Shown in pieces: positions 1,851 through 41,446 of a stretch of 64,000 nucleotides of DNA (positions are counted from its first letter, which is position 1; every line of letters starts with the position of its first letter). The DNA is taken from the NCBI RefSeq assembly GCF_006345805.1, contig NC_043010.1, positions 59,148,001-59,212,000 of the forward strand, given 5' to 3'. The notes beneath the pieces were generated by a model. It ran no database searches and had not been told where the DNA came from. It saw only the letters and a list, made by a program, of their open reading frames with translations. The stretch is from Octopus sinensis (taxonomy: Eukaryota). The translations under genes and the position numbers were made by a program.

Positions 1851-2761
1851 TGTTTCTAAGAAAGCACAAAGCCAAAAGTCTGGTAGGGTAAGTTAGGTCA
1901 AATACATCATCTCAAATATTCTGCTGGTATTATATTTTATCAGTCCCAGAAGGATGAAAGGCAGAATTGACCTCTGCAGATTTTGAACTCTGAATGAGCC
2001 ATAAAGAATAATGCAAAGCTTTTCATTCCGATGCATGGCAAAATTAAGGTAATGGGGGAAAAATGCAGTTTTCCTTTCAGCTCTTTACATTCTGAAGTGA
2101 AATCCCATCAATGCTAACCAATTACTGGGGTTGATGATATCAGATATCATCTCCATCTTCTTAAAATTGTTGTACCTAAATCAGAAACCATTATTATGGA
2201 AGGTGGCAAGCTGGCAGAATCTTTAGAGCATTGGGGAAAAAAACCCAATTTTTAGCATCCCCTGGCTCTTTACATACTGGATTCAGTTCCTCTCAGGATC
2301 AAACATTCGCATCAATGGTGTTCACAAAACCATACCTCTCAAAATTGATGGCCTCTATGAAAATGAGAAATCATTATCATCATCATCATCATCATTTATA
2401 ATATTTGTTTTATTGTGTGGTTATCTAGAGATAACCATCTTGTTTAACATTATGACACTTTTAGAAGTATTTGTAATTATAGCTACATTATACCTTTAAT
2501 TCTAAGTGTAAGCAGTATTTCAGAAATGGTAAATCATAAAGTCATATATTCTTGTGACAAAATATAAACATTCTCATTGAAATATAAATTTCCATGGGAA
2601 CACTAGCATTGAATTTAGGAGCAAGGTAATTCAACATAAAGATAGTTATAATGGCCAATAAAGTTTATGAAAAAGAATGAACATCACACAGTCTCGCTTT
2701 TTTTCCATGTACAAATCTAAACTATTTGTCTAATAAAATCAATGTAAAAGAGAAGATTGTC

Positions 2762-2795
2762 ATTGGTCTTCTGTTTAGATCATTCAACCAATCAG
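2762..2795 (+). promoter_or_regulatory. Putative promoter P1: ATTGG-N21-CCAATCAG (paired inverted NF-Y-type boxes)
   Basis: ATTGG at 2762 and CCAATCAG at 2788, about 210 nt upstream of the leader. The same pair occurs before all six leaders. Confidence 0.6.
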
Positions 2796-3000
2796 ATTCT
2801 CACTAAAACACAGAAAGAAATCACTAACAAAGATATGCATTCACGTTTCTGATGTTCTTAAACCAAACAATTATGTATAAATCTTGAATATTACTGCTTT
2901 TGAAATATGTATCTACATAGATAGATATATGTAAATAGTCATTGATAACAGTAAGCAAGCATCATCTTTGAGGATAAATACATACACAGAATATTATCAG

Positions 3001-3204
3001 ATGGACGTACTCCCACAAAACATACAACTTCAGTGACACATGCAACCCTCTCCTAGCAGCAGACTCTCTGCCTGACGTGCTACACTACTCCATCACCATA
3101 ACAGCCATTGTCACACCATTACAGCAGCACTTACAATGGATCTTTCTACAACAATACATCTTTCTCTTTCTCACTGAATAACCAATGATATAATTATTAA
3201 AAAG
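3001..3204 (+). other. Conserved non-coding leader (5'UTR) exon, copy 1, predicted to splice to G1 acceptor 13317/13318
   Basis: 204-nt block repeated six times at near identity. It ends in AAG|GTAAGT (3205-3210), and identity decays soon after the donor. The 5' boundary is uncertain. Confidence 0.75.
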
Positions 3205-5009
3205 GTAAGTTTCTATTTAATCTCTTTTATAATCTCATCTGATATAAGAATCTCTCTGAATATGTATTAAATATTAACAAAAGAACAAAGAGATTGAACA
3301 TTTTCTACATATTTTTCATTAATGTTGTTCAAATTGTTTTATTTCATAATTAATTAAGAGTTGTGGATTGAAATGTTCAACACTCAGTCTTTATTTATTG
3401 AAATTATGTTAAATGTGTTACATATACTGATCGGTAACAACTGAGAACAACCTATGAGATATATTATAAAGTGTGTGTTTGTGTGCGTGTGTGTGTGTGT
3501 TTGTGTGTGCGTGCGTGTGCATATTTGTTTATAAAGTAAGATATATTTCATCTTTATAGTAGATGTTTTATGAAAATTATATTTAGACGTTTTGTGTAGT
3601 AGAAATATGTTTTTTGTATGGTTATTGTATGTGAGTTTAGAACTTATGACACAGGAGTGTGTTATAGATTTTAGTTGGGGATAATGGCGGACATATTATG
3701 ATTGACTGCTGTCAGGGAATGACCAGGTATAGTGTCATGTCGTAGAAGATAAAATAATGAGAAAAAAAACACTTCTGTCTAGAATTGAAGAAATATAGAC
3801 TTATAGCATTTATGTCAAATCATTGCCATCGTCATCATCATTGTCAATGTGGCTTCCATGTTAGCATGGTTTGGACAGAATAATTCATTGTTTTCAAGAA
3901 CATCAACCTATTTCAACTATTTTCATAGTTTATTCATTTCTATGACTTGAGCCTAAATTCCATATTGTAATTTATAATGTATTTTCAAGATTTTGTTATG
4001 AACTTTTGTAATATTTTAATATCATTTAAAGCTTATATTTACAGAAATTAAAATTGAAGTGAACTTTATTATCAATAAACAATGTTTCCCAATTCAAACT
4101 GAAAACAATTCTTCAGCAGGAAAAGCATTGTGTTCAGATATATTCTACAATATTCTGTATCCATGTTCTATATAATTCACGTAAACTGCTACCATCCCTC
4201 TGTAGTTATCAGAATCGGTCGGTGCCCTAAATATCTACTCAAACTCTTTCTTCCTACTCTTTGTTCCTCATAAGATGTTACATTAACTCTCCCATGTCAC
4301 TTATTCTTTTGTTAGTTCTCCTGTCTGAGATTCTTTCATCATTCATGGATTGTTTTACTTCCCAGACAAATGATGCAAGTATATTTTAAACTACATGAAA
4401 CTGTGTTGGATTGCAGAATTTATTTCTTATTTAATTTTTCTGATGATTGTGAGACTGCTTTGCATAAGTTTTATTATACAAAGACTTTAGAAGAATCGTA
4501 CAGAATGTTCCGTATATGTAAAAGTATTTGTTAGAAACCACTGACTATGAAAAATGATAGATTTTGATGATGATAACACTCTTTGCTGAATGTAGCAAGC
4601 ATTCTTAAGTACACCTATTACACATTTGTCTGATTCCTTTAAATATTTACAATAAACAATTTGTGTATCATCAGCCAATATCTCAACTGTAATAAGTCAT
4701 GGAATCATAAATTATTATTCTGCCAAGCACATTTTCCTCTGTTTTCTCTATGTTATATCTTAATATCATCACTGTGGATACTAAAATTCTATGGAATGAA
4801 CATTTCCCATTCTAATTGGACTTTTCAGAACCACTAAACAATGACATATTCAATTTTGTATGTCATTTATTCACATTGTAATATGTCTGTATATTCCAGT
4901 CTGCCCCTTATATATCGTTGATATCACACAAGAACTAAGCAAGTTGTTGCTTATTTATAAGTTTATCATTTAAATATTTAAATTTTAAAGGATTGTATTT
5001 TCTTTGCTT

Positions 5010-6960
5010 TTTTTCCTCTTTCTTTATGATCCTAGAATCAAAAGGGCATGATGGGTCGATATATAAGCAACTTCACTTTTCCTTATCCATGATTGTAATA
5101 TCTGGTCTATTGTTTTCTAATTTCTTGTCTGTTTGAATTGGAAAGTCCCACAAGATCTTACATTTCTCCAACTTTAGTTCTCTTTCGACTCGATGATTGT
5201 ACCATGTTTTTTCCAGTTTCAAATCCCCATTTCTGGCACAGTTTCCAGTGTAAAATGTTTACAACCTGGTCATGCCTCCATTTCTTATATTCTTCCTGAG
5301 CCAACTTGGGGCATTCTGTCACAATGTGTGCCACTGTCTAATTCCAAGTCCCATTCTCTACATTTTTCTGACATATTCTTTCCGTTTATATTTTTCCTCA
5401 AGTTGTTTGTTTTCATTGTTTGATCTTGGGCCACTACAATTAGGCTCTGCTTCTTTTTATAATTGCCCCCTTTTTTAACCAAGTCCAAGATTTTGTTCTA
5501 CATATGTCCTCAGTGGCTCTCCAAAATTAGCCATGCAGAGGTTTCTCTTTGATTGATCTGATGTGCTCTATTTGTATTTCATTCTTACCTTTTTCTCCTA
5601 TTATGCTCTTCGTCACCTGTGCTTTATTAACTGCCTTTAGTCATTTTCCCTGTGCTACTTACTCTGTAAATACTCTGCTAGACTTTTCCTTTCCATTTGT
5701 ATAACTTATTCTACTGCTATTAAGCCTCTTCCACCCTGGTCTCTCCTCAGGTACAGCAGTTGATATCAGCTTTTGGATGGTGGAAAAAGGAACAACTTCC
5801 TAGTTTTTCTGTCAAGTTACTTTCTATCATTTTTGGTCCAGGCTATAATTTCAACTCCATATCTGATTAAGCTAACTGATCTTGAATTTATTGTTTCAAT
5901 AAAAGTTTTGGAATTCACCTTTGACTACAATAATTTTCTCACCCTCCTTGTGTACTCCCAACTGGTAATTTATTTCATTTCTTCATTTTTTAAAATCTCA
6001 TCTGCTTCCAGTATTCCCAAGTACTCGTACCACTGTCCTTTCTCAACCACTCTCATTCTTTGACCATTTGGCATTACAATTCCTTGGCTTCTTTCAAATC
6101 TTCCTTGTTTCATTTTCAGTATTGCCCACTTTTCTATCCCAAATTCCATACCTACATCATTTGAGAAAATGCAAATAGTATGTACAAGACTTTCAGGCTG
6201 TTTCTCATTTATATCATCCGTGAAAAGGAGATGATTTATCTGACCATTCCCTTTTCCCAAATTGTAGGCTATTTTAACATTACATAGTATCCTGGCCAAT
6301 ATGAATAGTAATAGAGATAAGCTATCACCTTGGAATATTCCACATCTGATGTTCACTGTTCCAAGTTTTTGTTTCCCTCTGATCAATTCCAATATTTCAT
6401 CATTATCATCGTTTAGCGTCTGCTTTCCATGCTGGCATTGGTTGGACGGTTCAACTTGGGTCTGGGAAGCCAGAAGGCTGCACCAGGCCCAGTCTGATCT
6501 GGCAATGTTTCTATGGCTGGATGCCCTTCCTAACGCTCCATGTTTTTTGCTATTCCAAACATGCTCATTGCTTCATTTATCCAACTATGTGGTACCATGT
6601 CATATGCGTTTTTGTAATCTAGCCCTGCTACATTCAGTCCCATCAATCTGTGTCTACAATTTTTAATTATCATTTTATCAATTAATGAGTGATCTTTTGT
6701 TGCCCTACTTTGTTTCCTGCATCCTTTCTCCTCTTCTGGAAGTAGATTCTTATTTTCCAGACGGTTGTATAATTCTTCTGCTAAGATACCAGTCATAAGC
6801 TTCCACATTAGTGGTAAATAGGTTATGAGTTGAAAATTTGATGCCAAGTTCCCTTTTATTAGCATCTTCTTTCAATTTTGTTGCCATTTCTTGCCGAGTG
6901 TCTTCCCAACACCTAGGGCAAAGAAACTTACTGTATACATTGGTAGGCCATCAAAATAAA
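5010..6960 (-). mobile_element. Decayed RLE-type non-LTR retrotransposon (R4/Dong-like): RT, zinc knuckle and restriction-like endonuclease; interrupted by an RTE-tail repeat at ~6406-6540
   Basis: Minus-strand peptides include LDYKNAYDMVPHSWI, GIFQGDSLS and INHLLFTDD (RT); LIVVAQDQ...KCR (pre-zinc-knuckle region); and ILWDFPIQTDKKLENNRPDITIMD...IDPSCPF (RLE). Many stops and frameshifts; boundaries approximate. Confidence 0.8.
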
Positions 6961-7089
6961 GATACCAGATTGTTAATTTACAAAGTCATGTGATAGAAAA
7001 AAAGGGCAGAAAAAGGAAAGAAAGAAAGAAAAAAGAAAAATGTAAGAAAGAAAACAAAGAAAATAAGGGGGAAAAGGAAAGAAAATTCC

Positions 7090-7450
7090 CAGTGACATTG
7101 CGCTTCTCCATTTGTGTGACTTTACCAGTTAAGACAATCTTTTGCATTTCCTGCATGGATGGTAAGCCAGGGATCATTCTTAAATAATTTTCTGTTCCTT
7201 TCTTTGATCATTCCAAGTGCTCCTACAATCACTGCTATTGCAACTGTCTTGAGATGCCACATCTTTTCAATTTCAATTAGCAAATCTTTATATTTTCTGA
7301 GCTTATCAAATTCTTTTGCCAAGATATTATGATCACAGGGTGTGCTCATGTCAATTAATAAACAGACTTTATTATTTTGGTCTTTCACAGCAATATTTGG
7401 TTTATTTGCTTTGATGGTCTTGTCTGTACGTACTGGAAAGTTCCAAAGAA
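7090..7450 (-). mobile_element. 3' fragment of a second R4/Dong-like LINE (RLE domain)
   Basis: Minus-strand ILWNFPVRTDKTIKANKPNIAVKD...LIDMSTP...KYKDLLIEIEKMW...IVGALG matches the RLE C-terminal pattern. Confidence 0.75.
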
Positions 7451-9553
7451 TCGTTATATTTTACTATCATTACTTTTGAACAGCTTCTAACGCTGGAGAT
7501 GTACTATGGTGTCAGCTGTTCACTACCAGTGAACTAAGGTAACACCTCTTATTTTTCAACAAAAAACTGAACGCTCATACCTCATCTTCCTCAGGTGAGT
7601 CCATCATTATTATGATGATGATGATGCTGCCAGACAAAGCACTCAATGGAATTTTTTCCCGTCCTCATCTTCTGAGGTTGTCTTTGCCTTTCATTCTTTC
7701 AGAGTCAATAAGATAAGTACCAATGTAACTGGCTTGCCCCTCCTCTCATAATCTGCTGGCCTTGTGCCAAAATTTGGAAGCATTACCATTATTGTAATAA
7801 TGCAAGCTGGCAGAATTGTTAGCACGCTAGACAAAATGCTTAATGGTATTTCATCCGTCTTTATGTTCTGAGTTCAAATTCAGCCATAGTTGACTTTGCC
7901 TTTCATCCTTTCGGGGGTCAATGAAATAAGTACCAGATGAATATTGGGGTTGATGTAACTGACTTACTCCCTCCCCTGAAATTGCTGGCCTCGTGCCAAA
8001 ATTTGAAATCATTATTATCAACATTATTATTCCATCGTAATACAGTCTTTAGTCATCTGTCAAGTCATTATTATTATTATGATGTTGCTCTTCACCCTAC
8101 CCCACCCTTTTCTGCACTGTCTGCTCCTCTATTCTACTCCCCTCCAGTTCATCTATCATTGATCCCTCTACAATCCTACCCAATTTCTACAGCTCTTACC
8201 TACTCTTCCCTGTTCCCTACTTATCATCTCTCATCTTTTGTTCTTTACACTTTTCACCCTCTCACTTGTTCTATATCTCTAACCACCTTTCATCTTCCAT
8301 TCACTCTTATAAATTCTACCTCTCCACACTTCCTCTTCTCTTGTCCCCCATTCTCTTCTGCACATCCCTTATCTTGAAAGTTCACCCTGACACCCCCCCT
8401 TCACCATCTTTATCACTTTCCAGTCATCAGTACCCTCTTCTTTAATATGAGCAACATGTAACTTGTTCTATTCTGAACCCTTCTCTCACCTTTTAAGCCC
8501 TCATTCCATAGCATAAAGCCGCTTCCCTCTCTACTGTTGTCCCACTCAGTCAAAGGGAATCTTAGTCTTGTAGGTTACACGGTACCTTCACAAGGGCTGA
8601 TGCTGCAAAAAAAAAGAAAAAAGTACAAGCTGTAAAGTGGGTAGCATTAGCAAGGGTCAGCCATACAAACTATGCCAAAGCAGACATTAGTGTCCAGTGC
8701 AACCTTCAGAGCCCGTTGGATCCTGTCAAATCATCCAGTCTATGTGATCATGGAAAATGAATGTTAAATGATGATGAGGAGGACAATGATGTGTGTGTGT
8801 TTGTGTGTACCCACCCGTCCCTTCCCTAGCAGCTGCTCATTCTTGATATTACTTATCCAGAACCATATCACTTGTTATCCCCACTTTATCCGTTAAAACT
8901 CTTCTCTCATATTTTTCTATTTTGTAAAACAAAAGTTATTGAAATAATTCGGAGGCACATCGTCTTAAGCATAATTTGTCATGGAATGCATTCTTAATCC
9001 CTGTATTTTCAAATGGCTTTGGCTTCTGATAAGTTTTACATCAAAGGTTGAGAAAATCTTAAACAAATATCAATAGACACATTATATTTCTGTACTAACA
9101 ACTGAATGGGATTTTCACAAATGTTTTCATAATATATAAAAGGAAACTAGCCTGTTTGATAAGCAATGTAAGAGATCACAATAGCATGCCAATTAGTAGT
9201 ATGTTTAGAAAGCCAACAAATGGATTTGTTTGTAATTATTGTTGAATGGAATTTGAATGCTAAATGAAAAATGCTCCAATCTTCAATTAGTCAGAAGGAA
9301 AAGGAAGCTGAAATGTGACATTACTGAAAGCTGAGAAGTAAAAGTGCAGCAATATATTTTGGGAAAATTACACAACTTAATAGCTTATGAAAAGTTGGAA
9401 CAACAGCACATGGAAAAACTTTTAGAAAAAGTCTTCACTATAACCACCACCATTTAATAAACTATATTAAAAAAAGAATCTTGGCAAGCCATCTTTTTGA
9501 GGCACGTGCTGCCTCTTTCAATTATTAAATGGGTCATTTCTTTGAAGGAAAAG

Positions 9554-9696
9554 TATAAGGGGCTGCTGAAAAGTTCCTGGCTTTAGGTAAAAAAAAATAT
9601 AGAAGGATCAGTTAATTGTGAGTTTATTCAACATATTCCCCTCTCAGATTCACACACTCATGGCAACAGTCGTCTCGTCTTTCTAAGCCCTGTAAG
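9554..9696 (-). mobile_element. Mariner (Tc1/mariner) transposon 3' end with terminal inverted repeat
   Basis: TA-AAGGGGCTGCTGAAAAGTTCC is a mariner-type TIR. The minus strand encodes LQGLE...ECVNLRGEYVE*, the typical mariner transposase C-terminus. Confidence 0.7.
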
Positions 9697-10129
9697 AGAT
9701 CTAAATAGTTGTGTTGGACTTGGGTCTCTGGATGACTCAAGGCTGTCATAAAATCGTACCATGTGTTTGAACCAGTCTATTGTGCGAAAGCGGTCAAAAT
9801 GCTAACCTTGTTGATACAATCAGTAGGCTGAAGGTTTGAAGTGAACTAAAAGTTAATGTAGAAAGGAGAAAATAATGACTTTACAGCAAAAAATGTTGTA
9901 TACAAGGACATTGGACTCATTACTGCAATAAAAATATGGCAGAAACTGAAATTAAGGATGATGAAAACTCATTTCATTATTTAACATCCAAGTGATTATT
10001 ATAATGTCATTGCTGAACTGTTTTCTTTCCCTGGATGTTGTTGTAGGATGTAGATGGTATTTTCTTAAAATATAGGCTTTCTTATTACTTATTAAGAAAT
10101 CTTAAATTTTTAAGGCACCATTCAAGCGT

Positions 10130-10415
10130 GATTGTTACCAACGTCGCCTTACTGGCACCTGTGCCAGTGGAATGTGTAAAAAGATTCGAGCAAAGTCGTT
10201 GCCAGTACCGCCTGACTGGCCCCTGTGCTGGTGGCACGTAAAAAGCACCCACTACACTCTCGGAGTGGTTGGCGTTAGGAAGGGCATCCAGCTGTAGAAA
10301 CTCTGCCAGATCAAGATTGGAACCTGGTGCAGCCATCTGGTTCACCAGCCCTCAGTCAAATTGTCCAACCCATGCTAGCATGGAAAGCGGATGTTAAACG
10401 ATGATGATGATGATG
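10130..10415 (+). mobile_element. RTE-3'-tail short interspersed repeat with (GAT)n tail (representative copy)
   Basis: Core GGTTGGCGTTAGGAAGGGCATCCAGCTGTAGAAAC...CATGGAAAGCGGATGTTAAACGATGATGAT. Further copies at ~6406-6540(-), ~22370-22630(+), ~23840-24075(-), ~31815-32091(-), ~32200-32500(-), ~33295-33425(-), ~37110-37392(+), ~44745-45003(+) and ~46195-46350(-). Confidence 0.85.
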
Positions 10416-11619
10416 AAAGTAAGCATTTAAGTCAGCTGGAATATTTTCTATTTGCAGAACTACTGTCTTGATTTAGAAGTGAATTCCTTCATATCCACCT
10501 GACCCCTACCTACCTAGGCAAGGGAAATATATGCAACACTGATCTAGTTTGGTTTCTGGAAGTCTATTTGCAAATTTAAAAAATTTGAATATAAACTTTG
10601 TATATATTGTACTTTTCACAGGGTCTTGGGTTTTGTTAAATATTGTTTTGGGGGTCCAGGAAATTTTCTTCATACTTTGAAAATGGATGTATTTTGTCAT
10701 TGATTAACTACATAATTTCAGCATTGGTTGAATCAATTCAATCGTTTGAAATATTAAATGCCAACTGAAATTTTTTTAAATTCTCCTAGTCTCAAGCTAA
10801 ATTTTCTCACATTTACCTTTATATTTTACCTTATGTCTTTAAAACTGGGAAATTCCCAATGTTAAAACCTGTGGTTTTCTGAAAGCTTTCACTGTAAGTT
10901 TACAGAATAATATATGGTTTAGTGTGGGATTCACCCGGTTTTCAAGTTATTTTTACTTGTGCATTGAAATATCATTCCTAAAAATGCATTATTTTTCTAT
11001 CTTGGCAGATCTCCCCAACAAACCCCTCCTCCAATAAATAAATAAATAAAAGTTTTATAATCTAAAAAAAACCACCACAAACATCAGGTTTTAGACTATG
11101 AAATTTTTAGTAGTTATGGGATTTAATGCAAACTTACATCTTTAAGAATGGCAACTGAATAAGTTTTTCTTGAAGTGTCAATAAATTTTCCTCTTCTACT
11201 TAAATTCAGAAAGATGAAGGATAAGGTTTTTTTCTTTTTTTCTGCTGGGCCAATGGAGAAATCTTTATGTGTTCATTGGACTTACTAGAAACAGTAGTCA
11301 AATCTCCTTTGTATTACAATAAAGTACACTTTGGATAATGTTCTGCATTTTTTAAAGTAAGGCAGGCATTGAGAAAGTTAATATCAGTTGATGTTATTCA
11401 AATAATATATGGAACCAACTAAAATACATTCAGATAAGAGTTGAAATGAAAATAAGAAATAGTCGTCTGTTAGCTCTCATTTCAGTGTGATATATACAGG
11501 TATCTATTGTTTGCTGTTGTTAGAAATCAGGCAAATGTATATATATATAAACTTTATGTCATTGTGTAGGAGCATATTTTTTCTTATGCTTTGTAGGGTA
11601 AATTTTCTTTTTCCTATTA

Positions 11620-13040
11620 AAGATAAATATTCAGCCTTCAATAGAGTACGCTGCTGTGTGATATGGTGGGCTCTGAGGAGGCTAGGAGTAGATGAGTGGC
11701 TTGTGAAAGTTGTACAGGCCATGAACAGGGGTGCTGTCTGTAAGCTGAAAGTTAACCATGAGTATAGTAAAGAATTTGGTGTACAGGTAGTTGTCCATCA
11801 AGGTTCAGCCCTCAGTTCCTCATTGTCCTTCAGGAATTCAAGACTGGCTGCCCCTGCGAACTCCTTTATACTGATAATATCTTGTCCTCAAAGTAGATAC
11901 TGCATCAGAGCTGGAAAAGAAATTCCAGATATAGAAACAAAGCCTGGAATTTAAGGGCCTTATGATCTACTTAGAAGATTAAGGTCTCAGTATGCAAAAG
12001 AAAAAAAAACAGACAGGACCCTACCCTGTTCAGGTTACTGGCCCCGCTCAATTTGTAGGAAAGGCATACGCAGGAATTCCATCTGGTGTACCTAGTGTAA
12101 GCCATGGACACACAAGAGGTGCAGTGAAATAGTAGGAGGGTTATCAGAGAAAAATGTTCATATGTGGAAGATGCATAGAAGCCACAAAAACTACAGATAC
12201 TTGGGAAATCAATTTTCTCAAATGCCCCAGAAGCTCTTTAGAGGTAGTGGATAATTTCTGTTACCTAGGGGACCAAATTAGAAGTGGGGGTGGACATATG
12301 GATAGCATAATAGCTAGAATAAGAATAGGATGGAGAAAATTCAGAGTTTTTACCTCTGTTTGGCAACAAAAGTTTTGTCTCTCTGAGTGAAAGGAAGATT
12401 GTATGATGCATGTATACGAACAGCAATGCTAGATGGAAGCAAGACGTGGGCCTGAATACAGGGGACATGTGAAGGCTAGAGAGGAGTAAGGCCAGTATGC
12501 TCTGTTGGATGTATTATGTAAGTGTACATGTTCGACAGAGTGCTAGTGTTTTGAGAGAGAAGTTGAGCATAAGCGGGATTAGATACTGTGTGCAAGAGAA
12601 AAGACTGTGCTGGTTTGGTCATGTCATGCAGATGGATAATGACAGCTCTATAAAGAAGTGCCATTCATTCAAAATTAATGGAACTTATGGAAGAGAGAGA
12701 CCCAGGAAGCCATGGGGTGAAGGACCACCTCAGAACACTGAACCTTTCACACAATATGCCAAAGGATTGAGATACCTGGCACCTTGTTGTACACAGGAAG
12801 AACCATCCTCCACAGCAGAAGTGTTAAGGCAGCATTCCCTGGTGAAAAGGATTGGTCTGCAAGAGTCCTGTGCTGGTGCCACATTAAAAGGCCCAAGCAC
12901 ACACTGTAAAGTGGTTGGTGTTAGGAAGGGCTTCCATCTGTAGAAACCAAACCAAATCAGACGGTGCAGCTCTCCAGCTTGCCAGCTCTGGTCAAACCAT
13001 CCTGCTCATGCCAGTGTGGAAAATGGATGTTAAAAGATGG
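11620..13040 (+). mobile_element. Decayed RTE-clade LINE (RT to 3'UTR)
   Basis: Peptides AFNRV...WWALRRLGVDEWLV...VHQGSALS, LEVVDNFCYLGD...RIRIGWRKFR and LCWFGHVMQM...GRERPRKPW, followed directly by the GTTAGGAAGGGC...GTTAAA tail family. Confidence 0.8.
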
Positions 13041-13357
13041 CAACTGCTGTTATCATAGTTCTGGTTCTCATTCTTGTTCTTCAGTGTAATTATCCAAAAA
13101 CAATTTAGTGAATTAAATAAAATCTCTTTCATAGGATACATAGCTTTTGCTATTTTTCTCAGTTTTGCAGATTCGTTGAAACAAATTATTGACTTCTTCA
13201 TAAAATCTATAAATGCAGTTTTCTAAAGTAATAGATTCACATTTCTAATGTAACTGATAACTATATTTTAAAATGATTTACTTCTGATAATAAATAGAAA
13301 TGTATTTCTCTTCTTAGGTTAACACATTTGATTTTTTAAACAAGACCAACTATCAAC

Positions 13358-16290
13358 ATGTTCCTGTCGTTGTCCATTGTATTGTCGCTGGTCCACTGTG
13401 TCCTGACCATAGACCTTACCTACCACGTGGAAGAAGAGAGAAGTCCAGGAACATATGTAGCAGACATTGCTGCTGATTCTAAACTTTTAGACAATGTTAA
13501 ACCATCTGACCAACATTTGATAACATTCAGTCAATTCAAACGAAAGGTGGCACAGTTATTTAATATCACCAAAACAGGTAAACTGTACACTGCTCAGACA
13601 CTGGATGCAGAAGATCTCTGCACATTCAACAAAGAATGTTCTAGAATTATGAAGGTTGTTGTCAATAAAGGAACCAGTGTTTCAAAAATATTAAAAATCA
13701 AAATTGTAATAGAAGATATCAATGACCATGAACCTAAGTTTCCAAAAGCTCAAATTTCTTTGAAATTCTACGAGACAGATGGAAAAGGCACTAAACAATC
13801 TCTGCCAAATGCCATAGATAAAGATGTAGGATTCGAAAATTCCTTAATACAATATAAATTGAAATCAAAGAATGGAGAACCATTCTCTCTGTCAGTCTCT
13901 AAAAGAGCTGATGGTATTTCTTCTCTTAAAATAGTTTTAAAAGAATCATTAGACAGAGAAATCAAAGATACATATTTATTACAAGTCATAGCTAAAGATG
14001 GAGGTTCACCAGCAAAACAAGGTATTTTAAATATAAATATTTCAATAATAGATTTGAACGACAACTCACCTGTATTTTCTAAACCTTTATATAATATATC
14101 CTTACAAAGTACACATCATAAAGCCAAACCCATCATTGTTTTATCCGTGACAGATGCTGATTCTGGGGAAAATGGTAAAATTACTTTCCATTTCAGTCCA
14201 AAAACATCAGATTTAGCAAAAAGCTATTTTGAAGTAAATGAAAACAGTGGAAGCATTTTGTTAAGTAAATATACAAGTTTAGGAAAAAAGAAAACTTATG
14301 AACTATTTATAGAGGCCAGAGATGGGGGCAGCCCTCCTCTCAGTTCTATAGCAACAGTCCTCGTAAATGTTATCAACCAACACAATAATCCTCCATCTAT
14401 TGATATTGATTATGTTTCTGCAATCAATGACAACACAGCTACCATCTCTGAAAACATTAAAGTCGGTAGTTTCATTGCTTATGTGATGGTCACTGACAAC
14501 GATGTGGGACAAAATGGAGAGGTCAGCTGTGATATCAAACATGATACATTCAAACTACAGTCAATGGGATCTAAAGAATATAAAATCATTCTAAACAAAC
14601 CAGTGGACAGAGAAACACAAGGACACTATAACATTCCTGTCTCTTGTCAAGATAAAGGATTACCTCCTCTTAAAAGTGTTAAAAGCCTCTCTATCCAAGT
14701 GACTGACATCAACGATGTACAACCACAGTTCACCAAAGATACATTCCAATTCCTCACCTACGAAAACAAAGATAAAGACTTCCCTATTGGTTTTGTCAAT
14801 GCCACTGACCCCGATCTTGGATCTGCTGGACAACTCACGTATTCTCTGCTGCGTAAAGAAAAATCCAATCTCCCATTTCTCATCACCAGTTATGGCTTCA
14901 TTTCAGCGACCATGTCATTGGACAGAGAGAAACAAGATGTGTATAAGTTTGAGGTTTTTGTCAAAGACAATGGAAGCCCATCTCTGAATGACACAGCGAA
15001 TGTTGTTGTTGAGATTCTAGATCAAAATGACAATGCTCCGTATTTTACATATCCTAGTAGTGACCCTTACACGCTAAATGTGCAGTACCATCCGCAGAGT
15101 AAGAGTGACATCACAGTTTTGAGAGCGTCTGATGGGGACAGTGGAAACAATGCTTTCCTCAGATATGCAATCATACGAGGAAATGATAAACAGTTGTTTA
15201 GTATGAACTCACACAGTGGTGCTTTATCCTTCTCCAGACAAGTTTATCTAAATGATGCTGGAAGTTATGAGCTGGTGTTTGTTGTGAAGGACAGTGGTAG
15301 TCCAGTTCAGTCGTCAACAACTAGTGTCACTTTGGTATTGGCTGTTAGTAACGAGACATCACCAATGTCGAAGAGTGGACCTTTACAATCTTCAGGTCGG
15401 GTCCATATGACATGGGTTATTATCATTGTATCATCAGCAGTAATAATATCAGTGGCTATTGTTGTTTCTATAACGCTGTGTATTATGAAATGTATTAAAC
15501 ACAGAGATAACACAGCTGTTGCCACAAAGAATACAGCCTACCAAGGTAGAGCAGAGATGAAACAATTGTTGTACCAGACTAACACTTCTGTTGCTATGTC
15601 GAGGAATGCAGAAGAGATGGTGAAGCGGAATATCTATTCTGAGAGATCCAAGAGTGAATGTTATGCAGAAGGTCAGCTACAGAACAAATATGAATCTTCA
15701 GTTCAGTCGAGAACTTTACCAAAACCTACCCCAGTAAGTGGAAACATTACATTTTCTCTCTGTAAAAGTGAACAATGAAATCTCTTTGAATATGTTTTAA
15801 CTTCAATAATACATTCCAATATTAAATTGTTCTCTATCCATGTTGATTGTAACTTCCATTGTTTGGTGTCTTCTCACATTTCTTTATCGTTTGTTTGTCA
15901 ACAGAAATACTGTCAACCTGTTGTGGTGACATCAAGTGATGATGCTGTGGAAGATAATGCTACTATGGTTTGTAACTATACATCAGATACAATGTCATCC
16001 AAGAGAAGTGGTAGACATGGAGACTTGAAACATTATGAAGAAATACCAGGAGTATCAGGTTAGTAAATAAACTGGTTTTTTTGACTTCATTTATATTTCA
16101 TGCATTGACATTTAATAATTATCCCTAATTCTTCAATGCATATTAAATTGTTGCCTATGTATACCTATGTTTTAGGATATTGTCAGAAATGTCTATTTTC
16201 TTCTAAATTTCAGATCAAAGTATTTATAAGAACAATGACACAGCTACATCAAAAGATTCCAGTGAAGAAACACCAGTGAAACATGTCTAA
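13358..16290 (+). CDS. Protocadherin G1 (signal peptide, 6 cadherin repeats, TM, cytoplasmic tail; ~868 aa after splicing)
   Basis: ORF 13358 has a hydrophobic leader and DINDH/DLNDN/DINDV/DQNDN linkers, LDRE, DxD and DGG-P motifs, and TM WVIIIVSSAVIISVAIVVSITLCIM. Coding exons are 13358-15733, 15905-16058 and 16214-16290. The acceptor TTCTTAG|G (13316-17) lies 40 nt upstream of the ATG. Confidence 0.95.
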
Positions 16291-17130
16291 ATTAATCAGC
16301 TGTTGAAGTAACAACTAACTTCATCTCTAGCTGTACATATGCAATATTCACTTATCAGTTCATAAACGATACCAATAAAAACATTCTTAGTGTTTCCTGT
16401 ATATTAGTCATCTATGTATACAGTTAACAAGTGACTGTATATGACTAAGAGTTCTGAGACAAAAACATAAAGTTAGGTTAAGTTTCGTTTTAGTCAATTT
16501 AAGGCTCTGTACTTTGATAATGACACTTTTATTTTTGAATAACTAATAATATCTTCTGTCTGCAAATAATAAAATCAAGCCTTTTGATAGAAACTGTGAA
16601 AAGCAAAGCCAACACTGATATGTTAAAGTTTCAATCCAACCCAGGTTTACTTAGGTTTTCATTCTGTCAGTTTCCTTGAAACTTTGCTCTGATGTCAAAA
16701 CGCTTGATTACATTTTTGATTCCATTCTCTTGCTAAATCTTTTGCCAATTTTAGAAATTACTTTTATAGTATAGTTATCTAACAATAGCAGTATAAATCA
16801 TCATCATCATCATCATCGTTAACATTTGTAATTATCTCTTCACTATTTTGTTTAAGACTAACTGTAAGCAATATTTTAAACTTAATTAAAAATGTCCATG
16901 TCACATATTCTTGTGACAAAATATAGACATTCTCATTGAAATATAAATTAAAATGAATTTAAATGAGAATACTGACATAGAATTGTTAGCAGTAATGTAA
17001 TTCAGCATAAAGATTGTTATAATGGCAGTGAGGATTGTGAAGAAGGATGAATATCACACAGTCTTGCTTCTTCCTTGTATAAATTTAAGGTATTTTGTCT
17101 AGTAAAATCAATATAAAGGAGATCATCATC

Positions 17131-17164
17131 ATTGGTCTTCTGTTTAGGTCATTCAGCCAATCAG
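17131..17164 (+). promoter_or_regulatory. Putative promoter P2 paired CCAAT boxes
   Basis: ATTGG at 17131 and CCAATCAG at 17157. Confidence 0.6.
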
Positions 17165-17257: not shown

Positions 17258-17304
<47 letters not shown>

Positions 17305-17356
17305 AATAGCTGACAAATATCATCTTTAAGGATAAATACATGCAGACTTTTATTAG

Positions 17357-17558
17357 ATGGACGTACTCCCACAAAACATACAACTTCAGTGAGACATGCA
17401 ACCCTCTCCTAGCAGCAGACTCTCTGCCTGACGTGCTACACTACTCCATCACCATAACAGCCATTGTCACACCATTACAGCAGCACTTACAATGGATCTT
17501 TCTACAACAATACATCTTTCTTTCTCACTGAATAACCAATGATATAATTATTAAAAAG
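17357..17558 (+). other. Leader exon copy 2 (to G2)
   Basis: Same block with a 2-nt deletion in the TC run. Donor GT at 17559-60. Confidence 0.75.
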
Positions 17559-23830: not shown

Positions 23831-25044
23831 TGACAGAATACAGGTGTCATCATCATCATCATCATCAGTGTTTAATGTCCACTTTTCATGCTGGCATGGG
23901 TTGGACAGTTTGGCTGAGGACTGGCAGGCCGGGAGGCTGCACCAGGCTCCAATCTGATCTGGCAAAGTTACTACAGCTGGATGGTCTATCTAATGCCAAC
24001 CACTCCGAGAGTGTAGAGGGTGCTTTTTACGTGCCAGTCAGACAGCACTGGCAGTGACCATGCTCAAATGGTGCTTTTTATAGATACACACACACATATA
24101 CACATACATATGCATACATATATATATATATATCTACACATATACATATATATATATACACACACACATATATATGTATATGTGCATATATATATGTGTG
24201 TGTGTGTGTGTTGAAAGAAAAATTGGAAATTAGAGGAATGAGATGTAGTGCACAAGTAAAATGGACTGCACTGGTACAGATATATGATGCATATGGATGA
24301 GGACATCCGAAAAAGAAGTGCCAATGTCTTAAGAGGAATGGAGCTTGCTACAAGGGGACAGGGAACAGGCTTATCTCAGAATCCTGAACCTCTTGAAGCA
24401 CAATGTGCATCATACACAAGTGGCCCCCACTCATCCCCATCACCCAACATCTTTTTCACTTCTGTGTTCTGCTGCTGTAAATAATTCTGAGCAGAACTGC
24501 TTACTCCACCAACTTTCCCCTGATACCACTTATGTTCTTCTCTACCTGGAATCATTTCACATGATATCCACCATTCATTCTTGACACTGTCCTCTCCACC
24601 CACATTTCACACTGATCACTCACCCAAGTCACCATTTTATCTCTCTTTTCATTGTCCCCATGCAATATGCTTGCCTCTTGCAACCTGCCCAACCACACAT
24701 CATCATCTCTCTCTCTCTCTCTCTCTCGTTCACTCTCTCATTCTCTCACATCCTTCTGTCAACTGTATTATTTTTATTATACTACTCCCTATCCTGACTT
24801 ATTCTGCACTGTCTCCATGGGCTATGCTTAAGTCTTGTTAGTGGCATGAGAAAACACACCCAGTGCATTTCTATAAGTGGTTAGTGAGAGGAACACATTC
24901 AACCTTGGTAACCAGGCCAAATGGCTTACATCAGGATCACCCATACCAGAATGGAGGACAAATGTAAAAGGAGGATGGTGATGATGATGATACTAGTGGC
25001 AGTGTCTGTGCTACAGGGGAATTATTAGCCACTCTAATAGGATC

Positions 25045-25091
<47 letters not shown>

Positions 25092-26628: not shown

Positions 26629-29600
26629 ATGTTCCTGTCATTGTCCATTGTACTGTCAATGGTCCACTGTGTGCTGACCATAGACCTTACCTACCATGTG
26701 GAAGAAGAGAGAAGTCCAGGAACATATGTAGCAGACATTGCTGCCGATTCTAAACTTTTAGACAATGTTAAACCATCTGACCAACATTTGATAACATTCA
26801 GTCAATTCAAACGAAAGGTGGCACAGTTATTTAACATCACCAAAACAGGTAAACTGTACACTGCTCAGACACTGGATGCAGAAGATCTCTGCACATTCAA
26901 CAAAGAATGTTCCAGAACTGTTAAAGTTATTATAAAGAAAGTGGATAGTTTCACAAAAATATTAAAAGTCAAAATAGTAATAGAAGACATTAATGACCAT
27001 GAACCGGAATTTCCAGAAAAACAAATCACTCTACAATTTAGGGAAGGTGATGGGAGAGGAAGGAAAAAGTCGATTCCAAATGCCATAGACAAAGATGTGA
27101 GTTATCAAAATTCTTTCATTGAATACAAACTTAAAAAATCTGATGACTCATTTTCCCTGTCAGTGTCTAAAAGAGCTGATGGTATTTCCTCGTTAAATAT
27201 TGTTTTGAAAGAAAAATTAGACCGAGAGATGAAAGCGAAATACAATTTAGAAGTTATTGCTAAAGATGGAGGTTCTCCATCTAAACAGAGTGTGTTAAAT
27301 GTTGAGATTGTTGTCGAAGATGAGAATGATAATCCACCTGTATTTTCAAAACCCCTTTATAATATTTCAATTAGAACCACACACGACAAGACAAAACCTA
27401 TTCTTACTTTGTCAGTGACAGACAAAGATATTGGATCCAACAGTAAAATTACTTTCCATTTCAGCCCCAAAACTTCTGATTTGGCAAAGAAATATTTCGA
27501 ATTGGATAAAAAGACTGGCAAAGTATTTTTATCTAGAATTTCTAGTTTGAATGAAAAAAATACTTTTGAATTATTTATAGAAGCCAGAGATGGAGGCAAT
27601 CCCCCAATCAGTTCTATTGCAACAGTTTTAGTAAATGTTATCAATCAACACAACAATCCTCCATCTATTGATATTGATTATGTTTCTGCGATCAGTGACA
27701 ATACAGGTACCATCTCTGAAAAGATCAAAGTCGGTAGTTTCATTGCTTATGTGATGGTCACTGACAATGATGTGGGACAAAATGGAGAGGTCAGCTGTGA
27801 TATCAAACATGATACATTCAAACTACAGTCAATGGGATCTAAAGAATATAAAATCATTCTAAACAAACCAGTGGACAGAGAAACACAAGGACACTATAAC
27901 ATTCCTGTCTCCTGTCAAGATAAAGGATTACCTCCTCTCAAAAGTGTTAAAAGCCTCTCTATCCAAGTGACTGACATCAACGATGTACAACCACAGTTTA
28001 CCAAAGATACATTCCAATTCCTCACCTACGAAAACAAAGATAAAGACTTCCCTATTGGTTTTGTCAATGCCACTGACCCTGATCTTGGATCTGCTGGACA
28101 ACTCACATATTCTCTGCTGCGTAAAGAAAAATCCAATCTCCATTTCTCATCACCAGTTATGGCTTCATTTCAGCGACCATGTCATTGGACAGAGAGAAAC
28201 AAGATGTGTATAAGTTTGAGGTTTTTGTCAAAGACAATGGAAGCCCATCTCTGAATGACACAGCGAATGTTGTTGTTGAGATTCTAGATCAAAATGACAA
28301 TGCTCCGTATTTTACATATCCTAGTAGTGACCCTTACACGCTAAATGTGCAGTACCATCCGCAGAGTAAGAGTGACATCACAGTTTTGAGAGCGTCTGAT
28401 GGGGACAGTGGAAACAATGCTTTCCTCAGATATGCAATCGTACAAGGAAATGATAAACAGTTGTTTAGTATGAACTCACACAGTGGTGCTTTATCCTTCT
28501 CCAGACAAGTTTATCTAAATGATGCTGGAAGTTATGAGCTGGTGTTTGTTGTTAAGGACAGTGGTAGTCCAGTTCAGTCGTCAACAACTAGTGTCACTTT
28601 GGTATTGGCTGTTAGTAACGAGACATCACCAATGTCGAAGAGTGGACCTTTACAATCTTCAGGTCGGGTCCATATGACATGGGTTATTATCATTGTATCA
28701 TCAGCAGTAATAATATCAGTGGCTATTGTTGTTTCTATAACGCTGTGTATTATGAAATGTATTAAACACAGAGATAACACAGCTGCTACCACAAAGAATA
28801 CAGCCTACCAAGGTAGAGCAGAGATGAAACAATTGTTGTATCAGACTAACACTTCTGTTGCTATGTCGAGGAATGCAGAAGAGATGGTGAAGCGGAATAT
28901 CTATTCTGAGAGATCCAAGAGTGAATGTTATGCAGAAGGTCAGCTACAGAACAAATATGAATCTTCAGTTCAGTCGAGAACTTTACCAAAACCTACCCCA
29001 GTAAGTGGAAACATTACATTTTCTCTCTGTAAAAGTGAACAATGAAATCTCTTTGAATATGTTTTAACTCAATAATACATTCCAATATTAAATTGTTCTC
29101 TTTCCATGTTGATTGTAACTTCCATTGTTTGGTGTCTTCTCACATTTCTTTCTTGTTTGTTTGTCAACAGAAATACTGTCAACCTGTTGTGGTGACATCA
29201 AGTGATGATGCTGTGGAAGATAATGCTACTATGGTTTGTAACTATACATCAGATACAATGTCATCCAAGAGAAGTGGTAGACAAGGAGACCTGAAACATT
29301 ATGAAGAAATACCAGGAGTGTCAGGTTAGTAACTATTAAATATACTGTCAGTTGTGAAGAATTCATTTCAACAGTTTACCCTCAAGTTTCTGGGGAATAT
29401 TTTGTGTCAACAATTTCTGGAATAAATCTGTTTTATTTATTATTTATCTATTCTTAACTAATGAGATAACAAGTTGCTCAAATTTTCAGTTCATAAACTC
29501 CAGAATATATGTTTTATTATAATATATTATTTGTTACTTTCTCATTAAGCAATTAATTAATGAAATCTGCAAGTCTGTGATTTTGTAATGCATGTTTCCA

Positions 29601-29690: not shown

Positions 29691-30184
29691 TACTTTACTT
29701 TGTGTAAATACAACACATAGACTCTTCAGTACACACACACACACACACACATTTTGCTATATACTCTATAAGAATATACATTAAGTAATATTTTCTTTTT
29801 TCAAATTATCCCTGGATTATAAAATAATGTTTTTATATACAATTTAAGAATCATCGTCATCATCATCATCATCAAACATCTGTTCTCCATACTGGCACTC
29901 AAAATTTAGTATTTGTTATTAAGTTTAATAGTTTTGGACATTTTACATGGTTTATCATATTTATTATGTCCATTAAAAAATTTATGTACTTCTAATCAAG
30001 ATGGTATAAATATACACAAAGGAGATTTTTATATGTTAGTGGCAAAGTTTTGTTGCATCTTTGGAGTAATATCGAGTAGAAAAGTTACAACTTATGCTCG
30101 GAATGACTGTAGGAAAGCACGATCATCGCAGCCTATGTGATCATGTTTTTCATAAAAAGGAATCAATGTCAAGAGAACATCTTC

Positions 30185-30218
30185 ATTGGTCTTCTGTCAC
30201 GATCATTCAACCAATCAG
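30185..30218 (+). promoter_or_regulatory. Putative promoter P3 paired CCAAT boxes
   Basis: ATTGG at 30185 and CCAATCAG at 30211. Confidence 0.6.
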
Positions 30219-30411: not shown

Positions 30412-30615
30412 ATGGACGTACTCCCACAAAACATACAACTTCAGTGACACATGCAACCCTCTCCTAGCAGCAGACTCTCTGCCTGACGTGCTACACTACT
30501 CCATCACCATAACAGCCATTGTCACACCATTACAGCAGCACTTACAATGGATCTTTCTACAACAATACATCTTTCTCTTTCTCACTGAATAACCAATGAT
30601 ATAATTATTAAAAAG
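30412..30615 (+). other. Leader exon copy 3 (to G3)
   Basis: Same 204-nt block. Donor GTAAGT at 30616. Confidence 0.75.
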
Positions 30616-31781: not shown

Positions 31782-32573
31782 TCACTCCTATATTTTTCAA
31801 TCATATTTTATTCTATCATCATCATCATCGTTTAACGTCCGCTTTCCATGCTAGCATGGGTTGGACGGTTCGACTGGGGTCTGGCTAGCCCGAAGGCTGC
31901 ACCAGGCCAGTCAGATCTGGCAGTGTTTCTACAGCTGGATGCCCTTCCTAACGCCAACCACTCCGAGAGTGTAGTGGGTGATTTTATGTGCCACCGACAC
32001 AGGTGCCAGACGAGGCTGGCAGACGGCCACGCTCGGATGGTGTTTTTTATGTGCCACCGACACAGGTGCCAGACGAGGCTGGCAGACGGCCAAATCTATA
32101 TTTACCAATATTCTGTTGTAAATTTATATTTCAATTATTTTGTGAACCGTTATTACTTTGTCAGTATATATACATTGTATGTATAAAGTTACGTTGAATA
32201 TCATCATCATCATCATCTAGTGTCTGTTTTCCATACTGGCATCAGTAAGATGGTTTAATTGGAGCTGGTAAGCCAGGGAGCTGCACCAGGTTCCTGTTTG
32301 TTTTAGCGTGGTTTCTACAGCCAGATGCTCTTCCAAATGCCAGCCATTCCACAGAGTGAACTGGGTGTCTTTTACATATTACCAGCACGGGTGTCTTTTA
32401 CATGTCACAAACATGGGTACTTTTTATGTGTCAATGGGTGCCTTTTATGTATCACTGAAATGGGTGCTTTGCACGTGTCACTGGCACTGCACACAACTAC
32501 AATTTCATTTAGCTTCATACGTCTTCTCAAGCACAGCAAATCACCAAAAATTTTGGTCTTTTATACATTTTTT

Positions 32574-35589: not shown

Positions 35590-35927
35590 TTACATTATAT
35601 ATTTCCTGTATAATGAATGACACTCAGGAAGATAATGAAAAAATTTACAATGGACAGCTTCTAGTGACATGTGGCTATGTGCTTAAGGAGTTTTCTTCTT
35701 AACCATGTGGCTTCAGGTTCAGTTCCACTGTGTGACACCCTGGGCAAGTGCCTTCTATAATCTCTAGCAAAGCATTTAGAGTGGATTTAGCAAATAGGAA
35801 TTGAAAAAAGTTCATTTCATATATATATATATATATATATATTTTCTACAGAAAATAAAGGAATTCTTAAATGTAGGATGGCTATGAAGACAGCTTAGAA
35901 AATTGGGTAAATACTCTTTAGAAGGAC

Positions 35928-35928
<1 letters not shown>

Positions 35929-36022
<94 letters not shown>
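35929..36022. repeat. (TA)n microsatellite (representative)
   Basis: Long TA run. Others: (TAA)n ~1820-1850, (GT)n ~3472-3520, (TA)n ~17260-17301 and ~25048-25083, TA/CA mix ~24085-24210, (CA)n in the 3'UTRs of G2, G4 and G5. Confidence 0.95.
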
Positions 36023-36025
<3 letters not shown>

Positions 36026-37551
36026 TGAGAATTTACAAAAAAGCAAAAGACGAAGATGGGTGTGTAAACAACAAACATGTATTAGTTTAACACTCAGGAA
36101 GTGAGAAAGTCTTTTACGCTCTTTGACAGGAAGGAACACAGAAACAAACAGGGAGAGAAAATAGAAACGGGTTTAGCGATATATATATATATACATGCAC
36201 ACACACATACGTTTTATATACAGACACACTGAGATAGATATGGGTATGTGTATCGGTGTCACTTTGTCTTGACATCATATGATTGTAGTGATTGTTTAAA
36301 TTATGCAAGCATAGAAGGACAGATGTTAAAACAACAATGTCAAAGATGGAGTATCATTGTCATTGAAGAGGTTTGTCAATTAAAAAAAAAAGCATTAGCA
36401 AGGTCTTTAATGTAGATTAAAAATTATTGAAAATATCTATTGAACAATTATTGAAGCTAGAAAATCATTTGAACATTTCTCCGTCACAAATTTGGGAAAC
36501 AGTATGAATTGTTGAGTCCATAGGGGATCAAAAAAGTCAGCACTTCATACCTTGTCATCAGGATTTTGCTTTGTTATTTTTCTGGTCATGTCATGTAAGT
36601 CAACAAAAAATAAATCCCTCTACATGGGCTCTTGATTTACTAGAATTAGCAGCCAAATCATCTTAAAATTATATCTTACTCTCTTACAAAAACAGAAAGG
36701 TCACATTGCATGATATACTTGTAAATGCACTGTATGGAAAAAAAGATAGATATATATAAGATGAGTGCAACTTAAATGCCTTTTATCATAGATCTTCTCA
36801 GTCAGGACTGACCCAAGGCTACGTAACAACAACAGGCCACAAGGCTTGGCTGACAGCTTGTGTTTTGTCAGCCACATGCCACATGGTCACAGCAAATGAG
36901 GAAGTATCTCACAGAGATGGGGATTGACTGGGGCACTGCTCAGACTGTTGCCCAGGATGACCTTGGCAAATACAGATAAATAGTGGATGCAGCAATGCAC
37001 TGCCCCCTTCTCTCATACCACTTTAATGGAGTACCTAGTTGTTGATGTTTTTTTTTTTCAATTCTGTACTTACACTGGAACAAATCACTTCATATGCTCT
37101 TTAATCTATCACCTGACTGGCTCCCATGCAAGTGACATGTAAAAAGCACCATTGGAGTGTGGTTGATGCCAGTAACGCCTGACTGGCTCTTGCGCTGGTG
37201 GCACATAAAAAGCACCCACTACACTCTTGGAGTGGTTGGCATTAGGAAGGGCAGGCATCCAGCTGTAGAATCCTTGCCAGATCAGATTGGAGCCTGGTGC
37301 AGCCTCCTGGCTTGCCAGACACCAGTCAAACCATCCAACACAGGCCAGCATGGAAAACAGACATTAAATGATGAAGAGGATGATGATGATGACATGAAGT
37401 GATAGATTTATATATTCCTATTATTTCAAAGATATCTGTGTAATTTAAACTGTTATTTATTTCTCATTACAATTCTTTAATGAATTTGTATTTCTGTTTT
37501 AGGTCCCATCAACATATTCAAACGTTTTTAAGTATCCATCATTCTACAATA

Positions 37552-40469: not shown

Positions 40470-41081
40470 TCCAAATACTGAACTCATCTGACTACAACAT
40501 ATTCCAATCATTACACATGCAATCTCAAAATGAACACTCATTATTATACATACTGAATAGTGCTATATAAATGTAATGACAGGGTTGTCAACAATTAAGC
40601 TGTTATTCTGATAAGTAAACAGAAGTTACGTAAAAGAATAGATTTCCTTTTAGTCAATAAGTTCCTATATTCTTTGTTATGTTTATTTTCCATGGAAGTA
40701 TACATTTACACTTTATCAAAAAAATAGTTATTTTATACATCAAAATTTGTTCTTTTCTGAATATTACTTTTGAATTCTAGCATCAATATCAGGCTAAAGT
40801 CTCTTAGAGTGGGTTCCTGTATATCTGATCAACCCTAGTACTAATATGGGCTTCTTGCACAGACCATAAAAATCAATGTATATCCTGATATATTTTAGTT
40901 CAATTTCTTCCACAATTTAGGTTTTCTTTCATTCTTTTGCAGTCATTAAAATAATGACGTTATAACTGGCATCAAGTTAAATTACTACACTTTTATCACA
41001 AATTCTTTTAGCTATCTGCCTATTTACTGAATTATTATCATCAGCAACATTATTATTATTATTATTATTATCCTCATCATC

Positions 41082-41112
<31 letters not shown>

Positions 41113-41446
41113 TGAAGGTATTTTGTTATGGCTCTGTAAGACTAAATATTAGTAATTATAGCTACTTTATTTCATGAAATTCAACTACAAAAAATATTTC
41201 TGATTTAATCAAAGATTACCATGACACATATTCTTGTGACAATATGGAAACATTCTTATTGGAATGTTTCTGTTCTTAGTGATAATCCTAACATTGTATT
41301 TGGGATGTATGACGATTTAACATACAGATAACTATTTTCATAGTAGTAAGGCTTATGAAAATGGATGACCATCACACAGTCTCACTTTCTTCCTTGTATA
41401 AATTTAAGGTATTTTGTCTTGTAAAATCAATATGAAGATGATCGTC

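Follow-up and report, generated by a model that had tools for sequence, protein, structure and literature searches.

A tandem array of protocadherin (Pcdh) genes, among them the six designated B to G, occupies a 64,000-nucleotide (nt) stretch of Octopus sinensis DNA (contig NC_043010.1, positions 59,148,001 to 59,212,000 of the forward strand; hereafter the window), and a block of 202–204 nt recurs almost unchanged ahead of each of the six. It is likely that each block is the first exon, or leader, of the Pcdh gene downstream of it, that the near-identity of the six copies is mainly the product of gene conversion, and that a 47-nt core within the leader has been kept by long-term selection. 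Taken by itself, the first-exon assignment is probably right. We infer the transcription start, the use of the splice junctions and any regulatory role from sequence.

Leader blocks and the gene to which they belong

A preliminary description of this DNA had placed six blocks of 202–204 nt in the window, each ending in AAG|GTAAGT, and all six lie at the coordinates it gave.

3001–3204, + strand: leader block 1, presumed non-coding exon 1 of gene B, 3' end AAG|GTAAGT
17357–17558, + strand: leader block 2, 5' of gene C
30412–30615, + strand: leader block 3, 5' of gene D
41683–41886, + strand: leader block 4, 5' of gene E
50907–51109, + strand: leader block 5, 5' of gene F
59069–59271, + strand: leader block 6, 5' of gene G

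The nonamer AAGGTAAGT occurs exactly six times in the 64 kilobases (kb), in each case on the + strand at the end of a leader block (3202, 17556, 30613, 41884, 51107, and 59269), against 0.66 occurrences expected by chance; none of 100 shuffles gave six. Alignment of the six blocks (~3001–3204) shows just a handful of single-copy differences, with mean pairwise identities of 0.93, 1.00, 0.99, and 0.98 in successive 50-nt windows over 2999–3198. Identity in windows of the same size is 0.78 directly 5' of the block, 0.83 in the 50 nt past the donor, and 0.35–0.65 elsewhere in the flanks. The block has stops in all frames and no open reading frame (ORF) longer than 34 amino acids on either strand; its upstream ORFs comprise 2–16 codons, and their frame is not kept in Argonauta.

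The six splice acceptors listed earlier for the coding exons are also exact. Each consists of a pyrimidine tract followed by tttag|G, 40–60 nt 5' of the ATG.

3205–13317, + strand: presumed intron 1 of gene B, 10,113 nt
13318–15733, + strand: exon 2 of gene B; acceptor tcttag|G at 13318, ATG at 13358, donor CCA|GTAAGT after residue 792
15905–16058, + strand: exon 3 of gene B, 154 nt
16214–16290, + strand: exon 4 of gene B, 77 nt, the last exon, ending in the stop codon
26569, + strand: start of exon 2 of gene C, ATG at 26629
37503, + strand: start of exon 2 of gene D, ATG at 37552
46984, + strand: start of exon 2 of gene E, ATG at 47040
55217, + strand: start of exon 2 of gene F, ATG at 55269
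62381, + strand: start of exon 2 of gene G, ATG at 62433; the gene extends past the window edge

Each unit comprises a leader, an intron of 3.1–10.1 kb, a 2.4 kb coding exon ending CCA|GTAAGT, a 154-nt exon, and a 77-nt last exon, and the leader sits 0.7–1.6 kb past the stop codon of the preceding gene. Presumed intron 1 measures 9010, 6887, 5097, 4107, and 3109 nt in the remaining units. Among the six units compared, intron 1 contains nothing common to all beyond ~40 nt past the donor.

Homologous leaders were sought over ~230 kb with R1, a sequence-only model of the leader. Significant matches (E values from 2e-9 to 1e-73) fall in the window (six) and at loci L001 (one), L003 (three), L005 (one), L006 (one), and L008 (two); there is one per intergenic interval, always on the gene strand, and none elsewhere in the sequence searched. 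Genomic contig L010 gave weak leader matches only (E about 0.01). L001 is a syntenic O. vulgaris locus, ~96% identical to the window. More distant homologs lie 8.1 kb 5' of O. bimaculoides P0014 (67% protein identity; L005) and 3.9 kb 5' of O. vulgaris P0006 (L006), and a further O. sinensis subcluster (59% identity; L008) has two, ~0.8 kb past one gene and 2.5–3.4 kb before the next. A GTAAG donor is present on the P0006 homolog and on both L008 homologs, and a weaker one, GCG|GTATTT, on that of O. bimaculoides. The three homologous leaders of Argonauta hians (A, B, and C) are situated ~0.95 kb past one gene and 2.5–4 kb before the next, and AG|GTAAG is unchanged in all three; their identity to the O. 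sinensis leader is ~78%. Alignment of an O. sinensis unit with an Argonauta unit matches solely exons 2–4, the leader, and a CCAAT island 5' of it. A pyrimidine-tract/AG acceptor lies 40–97 nt before the ATG at all genomic Pcdh loci examined (six in the window, two in Argonauta, L005, L006, L008, and L010). Donor and acceptor are conserved across the six paralogs, A. hians, and three other Pcdh subfamilies. This conservation, together with the promoter-type motifs and the association with the downstream gene, supports the earlier proposal that every Pcdh gene has a non-coding leader exon of its own, which is spliced to its coding exon.

An origin of the block as a dispersed repeat, or as a fragment of a transposon, placed between the genes by chance is extremely unlikely. 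Elsewhere in its introns the window does have clearly multi-copy repeats, in both orientations, and the remaining sequences shared between units in the interval from leader to coding exon are scattered repeats, again in both orientations, none of them in all six units. In Argonauta as in three octopus species, however, each unit has exactly one leader, which always runs on the gene strand and keeps its relative position (the O. bimaculoides copy counted here is a diverged homolog with a weak donor). The strong copies have flanking homology and a conserved donor, and no stray copies were found in ~230 kb. The preliminary description had named a dispersed repeat unrelated to Pcdh genes as an outcome that would overturn it; all significant R1 matches in the ~230 kb are instead tied to Pcdh intervals.

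Two contigs from unrelated public runs, L007 and L009, which belong to another subfamily, carry a leader-like core that is followed 143–150 nt later by a Pcdh ATG, the interval lacking an acceptor signal; they are alike up to ...CAG, after which they differ. This layout resembles a spliced messenger RNA, and is suggestive only. A search for their genomic counterpart with P0151, the protein on L009, returned just relatives of 62–71%, and no public-run transcripts carrying the N-terminus of the window's own subfamily were found. A third contig, L004, also represents another subfamily, and has an unrelated 5' untranslated region (UTR).

Two loci indicate which neighboring gene the leader accompanies. 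In the 5.8 kb before Argonauta leader A there is no Pcdh coding sequence. At L006 the sole leader is preceded by a decayed gene remnant and followed by the intact P0006, and none is present past the 3' end of P0006. As the upstream gene is absent in one case and decayed in the other, the leader goes with the downstream gene. The same two loci speak against a very improbable alternative, in which the upstream gene would supply the block as the far end of its 3' UTR, or transcripts reading through would include it as an internal exon. Such an origin would suit a block that begins just 0.7–1.6 kb past the preceding stop, and three sequence features are shared between its support and the case against a first exon. 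In most copies there is an AG at the 5' edge of the block (TTATYAG|ATGG), allowing use as an internal exon; ATTAAA is found at 3194–3199, within the last 11 nt of the block; and neither canonical poly(A) hexamer, AATAAA or ATTAAA, is present from the stops of genes E and F to the next leaders (50161–50907 and 58333–59069). Upstream transcripts or their 3' UTRs may run into the promoter and leader of the next gene. Also to be counted against the first-exon assignment and its corollaries are the limits of L007 and L009, which could be unspliced or genomic, and which reach hundreds of bases 5' of the core through promoter-like sequence, so that they fix no start; and the fact that the ortholog test for relaxed constraint, described below, is a single pair. 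The 3' UTR or read-through origin is nevertheless countered by the hexamer, which is not conserved in Argonauta, L005, or L008, while the GTAAG donor is kept in Argonauta and L008 (L005 has the weaker GTATTT). The 5' AG, moreover, is missing in Argonauta A.

Upstream of the leaders are two candidate promoter motifs, identified as consensus matches.

2761–2794, + strand: double CCAAT island (CATTGG-N21-RCCAATCA), unit 1
17130–17163, 30184–30217, 41446–41479, 50692–50725, and 58854–58887, + strand: double CCAAT island, other units
2974–2981, + strand: TATA-like element ATAAATAC, unit 1, by resemblance to the consensus
17332, 30387, 41658, 50880, and 59042 (starts), + strand: TATA-like element, other units

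The double CCAAT island is matched in six of six copies, with none expected by chance, and is invariant in Argonauta copies B and C. It lies ~240 nt 5' of the leader block, inside a second island of identity (2754–2852; 0.78–0.81 in 50-nt windows). The TATA-like element precedes the start of the near-invariant block by 25–27 nt in all six copies, and Argonauta B and C have ATATAAATACAA at the matching position. We take this combination to resemble promoters of the NF-Y type, with which it shares two CCAAT pentamers in opposite orientation, here 21 nt apart and invariant between Octopus and Argonauta, and a TATA-like element downstream. It differs from them in that the island is ~240 nt from the presumed start, farther than usual, and that a TA microsatellite of variable length intervenes between island and TATA-like element. 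TA-rich microsatellites occur at 17260–17308, 25044–25088, and 35926–36025; the one that separates the two promoter-type motifs of leader 2 differs in length between O. sinensis and O. vulgaris. Separately, L007 (296–410) and L009 (50–130) have in common a conserved stretch with an inverted CCAAT (GTGATTGGC / GTGACTGGC), ~200–300 nt 5' of the leader-like core, which echoes the CCAAT island of the window.

The position of the TATA-like element is also relevant to the proposal, which we consider unlikely, that the block is a promoter element, with the core 5' of the true start and the last 50–80 nt before the donor alone transcribed. This layout would be nearer to that of vertebrates, in which a conserved element directly precedes the start. 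It would account for distant subfamilies keeping just the core and the donor-proximal part (R1 matches begin at 99–104 of 258), and for a TATA-like element that is absent or unclear in L005 and L008. It fits poorly with an element standing at constant distance before the onset of near-identity in every copy in the window and in Argonauta B and C, and with L007 and L009, which, if RNA, contain the core.

Under the first-exon assignment, transcription would start near the first base of the block, 25–27 nt downstream of the TATA-like element, and the leader would be spliced from AAG|GTAAGT, across an intron of 3–10 kb, to the tttag|G acceptor 40–60 nt before the ATG. The predicted 5' UTR would be 244–262 nt long and G-poor, and would contain three or four short upstream ORFs. 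Each gene would then be complete in itself, with its own promoter and leader ahead of a 2.4 kb coding exon and two small coding exons at the 3' end. A spliced-leader RNA gene was considered as another identity for the block and rejected, as the block measures 204 nt against an expected leader of 15–50 nt and a cis acceptor is present in every unit; there is no match to an Rfam spliced-leader family, and by eye no Sm-like AAUUUUGG past the donor.

Near-identity of the leader copies

The leader is not the only homogenized part of a unit. In gene B, the gene body from 14520 to 16019, which includes all of intron 2 (15734–15904) and exon 3, shows paralog identities of 0.99–1.00, and a corresponding stretch of ~1.5 kb, comprising the 3' half of the coding exon, intron 2, and exon 3, is found in every unit (e.g., 1–1105 and 27790–29324). 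Paralog identity in the region encoding the N-terminal cadherin repeats is 0.67–0.90. The GC content of third codon positions (GC3) is 0.364 in the homogenized part versus 0.21–0.24 in the variable part. GC content is likewise higher in the leader (0.40–0.42) than in its flanks (0.25–0.35), although for the leader this is inseparable from an exon effect. In the one ortholog pair available (n=1), the leaders differ by six substitutions in 202 positions and one indel, against 2.35% genome-wide over 13 kb, and the immediate leader flanks differ by 1.3–1.6%.

Fugu Pcdh clusters show a regional homogenization pattern of this kind, ascribed to gene conversion (PMC1852091), a process also suggested to act on cephalopod Pcdhs (PMC9068888). 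Because an intron in the gene body is equally identical and GC3 is raised, the near-identity of the six leaders is best explained by gene conversion, and would mainly be the outcome of lineage-specific conversion between tandem paralogs. Conversion would act on top of moderate long-term purifying selection on the leader, and homogenization probably persists since this selection keeps the leaders similar enough to go on converting.

Homogenization of the octopus gene body is regional gene conversion, convergent with that of the clustered Pcdhs of teleosts (PMC1852091). Both systems have head-to-tail paralogs, raised GC3 in the converted part, lineage-specific homogenization, and sharply bounded tracts of >99% identity beside a divergent recognition-domain region. 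In contrast to the teleost variable exons, the octopus array has a separate conversion island, ~250 nt in size, over a non-coding 5' exon that several kb separate from the coding exon, and its gene-body tract takes in an intron.

The preliminary description had interpreted the constant block differently, as one cis-regulatory RNA module shared by all isoforms, for translation, localization, or promoter choice. There is little likelihood that selection holds every base of the leader constant for such a module. Block identity of 99–100% against 35–80% in the flanks would be expected of such a module, as would the youngest pair, copies 5 and 6, which differ at 2 of 203 positions in the block and by 5.4% over 3.1 kb of flank. 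A further point in its favor is the strongest upstream AUG (ACAAUGG), which stands in strong context in Argonauta and in all six copies but one. The equally identical intron in the array, however, argues against it, as does the ortholog pair, in which the leader shows no sign of slowing (one pair). The Argonauta copies diverge by 5–30% (B and C are 95% alike, A and B 70% identical). Predicted structure gives the module no help: the folding energy of the leader RNA has a z score of −0.93, the covariation term is −0.05, with two small stems that are invariant and not covarying, and an Rfam scan of the leader found no family at gathering score. The strong upstream AUG is lost in copy 5, in L008, and in the O. 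bimaculoides homolog, and upstream ORFs are therefore not the conserved feature. A 7-base-pair inverted repeat in the block, CCATTGT...ACAATGG, was examined as an RNA stem and dismissed, since compensatory changes are lacking and the repeat is disrupted in two distant homologs; it presumably resembles SOX-type sites. As gene conversion homogenizes introns too, near-identity alone is not evidence of function in this array.

The 47-nt core and the vertebrate promoter element

One part of the leader stands apart from the pattern of homogenization.

3082–3128, + strand: 47-nt core ACACTACTCCATCACCATAACAGCCATTGTCACACCATTACAGCAGC, identical in six of six copies and kept across octopod Pcdh subfamilies
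3101–3128, 17457–17484, 30512–30539, 41783–41810, 51006–51033, and 59168–59195, + strand: the 3' 28 nt of the core, exact

The core is 83% identical to that of the L008 subfamily, the coding exons of which are 68% identical at the nucleotide level. Its identity is 74–77% in two further subfamilies and 83–89% in Argonauta, and it is found upstream of genes with 54–67% protein identity to those of the window. Being better conserved across subfamilies than the coding exon, the core looks to be the part of the leader under long-term selection. It may act at the DNA level, as a site shortly past the start, or in the RNA, as a 5' UTR element. The two L008 units were tried as a test for conservation islands and proved unsuitable, their duplication being too recent (93% identity over 1.3 kb).

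In vertebrates, all clustered-Pcdh promoters contain a conserved sequence element (CSE) of ~22 base pairs, one per variable exon, to which CTCF binds (PMC3333863). The octopus core resembles the CSE in being a short non-coding motif that stands once before every tandem Pcdh gene and is common across subfamilies. The two have no sequence resemblance, and the CTCF-type consensus CCASYAGRKGGCRS, allowing up to two mismatches, has no matches in the 64 kb where 3.5 are expected. The core is also longer, at 47 nt, and lies ~80–130 nt inside the presumed transcript rather than upstream of the start. A further difference from vertebrate clustered Pcdhs is that each octopus gene has its own exons 3 and 4, with no shared constant exons. 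The earlier suggestion that the block is a candidate counterpart of the CSE consequently finds no support as a statement of homology, given the lack of a CTCF-type motif and the location of the core inside the presumed transcript, and survives as a loose analogy, that of a family-wide conserved non-coding core. It is tempting to speculate that the core is the octopod functional counterpart of the CSE, a convergent, CTCF-independent docking site just inside each leader that selects the promoters firing in each neuron. We regard this as a doubtful, if conceivable, extension of the data; if true, a single factor or chromatin mechanism at the core would choose among >100 tandem Pcdh promoters in a given neuron.

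Gene models, neighboring features, and implications

Exons 3 and 4 are separate for every gene, and no constant exons are shared between genes, as already stated for cephalopod Pcdhs (PMC9068888). The spliced products of genes E and F match database proteins P0134 and P0125 exactly; both proteins are carried by O. sinensis chromosome record CM016872.1, in which the window again spans 59,148,001–59,212,000. The plain 806-amino acid ORF has no exact match among database proteins because the true product is spliced. The gene ranges of annotated assemblies span coding sequence only, and are uninformative on UTR exons.

Gene C (26629–29000) has an exon 2 that is 4 nt shorter than in the other genes, leaving two overlapping ORFs (26629–28254 and 28179–29045); its database model P0012 (823 amino acids) omits a segment and thereby keeps frame. 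The gene is either a pseudogene or affected by an assembly indel. Gene D contains an in-frame ATG within the pyrimidine tract of its acceptor (37480–37502), which would add 24 residues were the intron retained. The P0132 model begins at the downstream ATG of this gene (37552), which fits use of the acceptor.

Three database models, P0132, P0128, and P0135, extend across paralog boundaries at genes D/E (37552–50161) and F. P0132, considered as evidence of splicing between genes and rejected, is a chimera that follows gene D to approximately residue 305 and then gene E, the switch falling inside exon 2; the near-identity of the paralogs most likely produced it as an artefact. P0128 consists of gene F plus a foreign last exon, P0135 is a fusion of 5410 amino acids, and both are probably artefacts of the same kind. 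Boundary-crossing models are therefore not evidence of inter-gene splicing.

At L006, a truncated Pcdh remnant (2699–3746) lies upstream of O. vulgaris P0006, and the gene downstream of P0006 (19967–22310) has a degenerate N-terminal part and no detectable leader; both are likely pseudogenes within the array. Several first introns of the window contain a repeat of ~200 nt in both orientations (6395–6536, 10152–10416, 23853–24036, 31811–32016, 37167–37386, 44745–45004, and 46194–46273), which is probably a transposon fragment.

The searchable literature describes whole-gene duplication and possible gene conversion, with no mention of promoters or leader exons. What is new here is a testable candidate promoter anatomy for each gene, consisting of a double CCAAT island, a TATA-like element, and a leader exon, together with a family-wide 47-nt core. 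The R1 model finds leaders in other subfamilies and species, and experiments on promoter choice and single-cell analyses of 5' ends become designable. The question that these address is how a choice is made among roughly 170 Pcdh genes in each octopus neuron.

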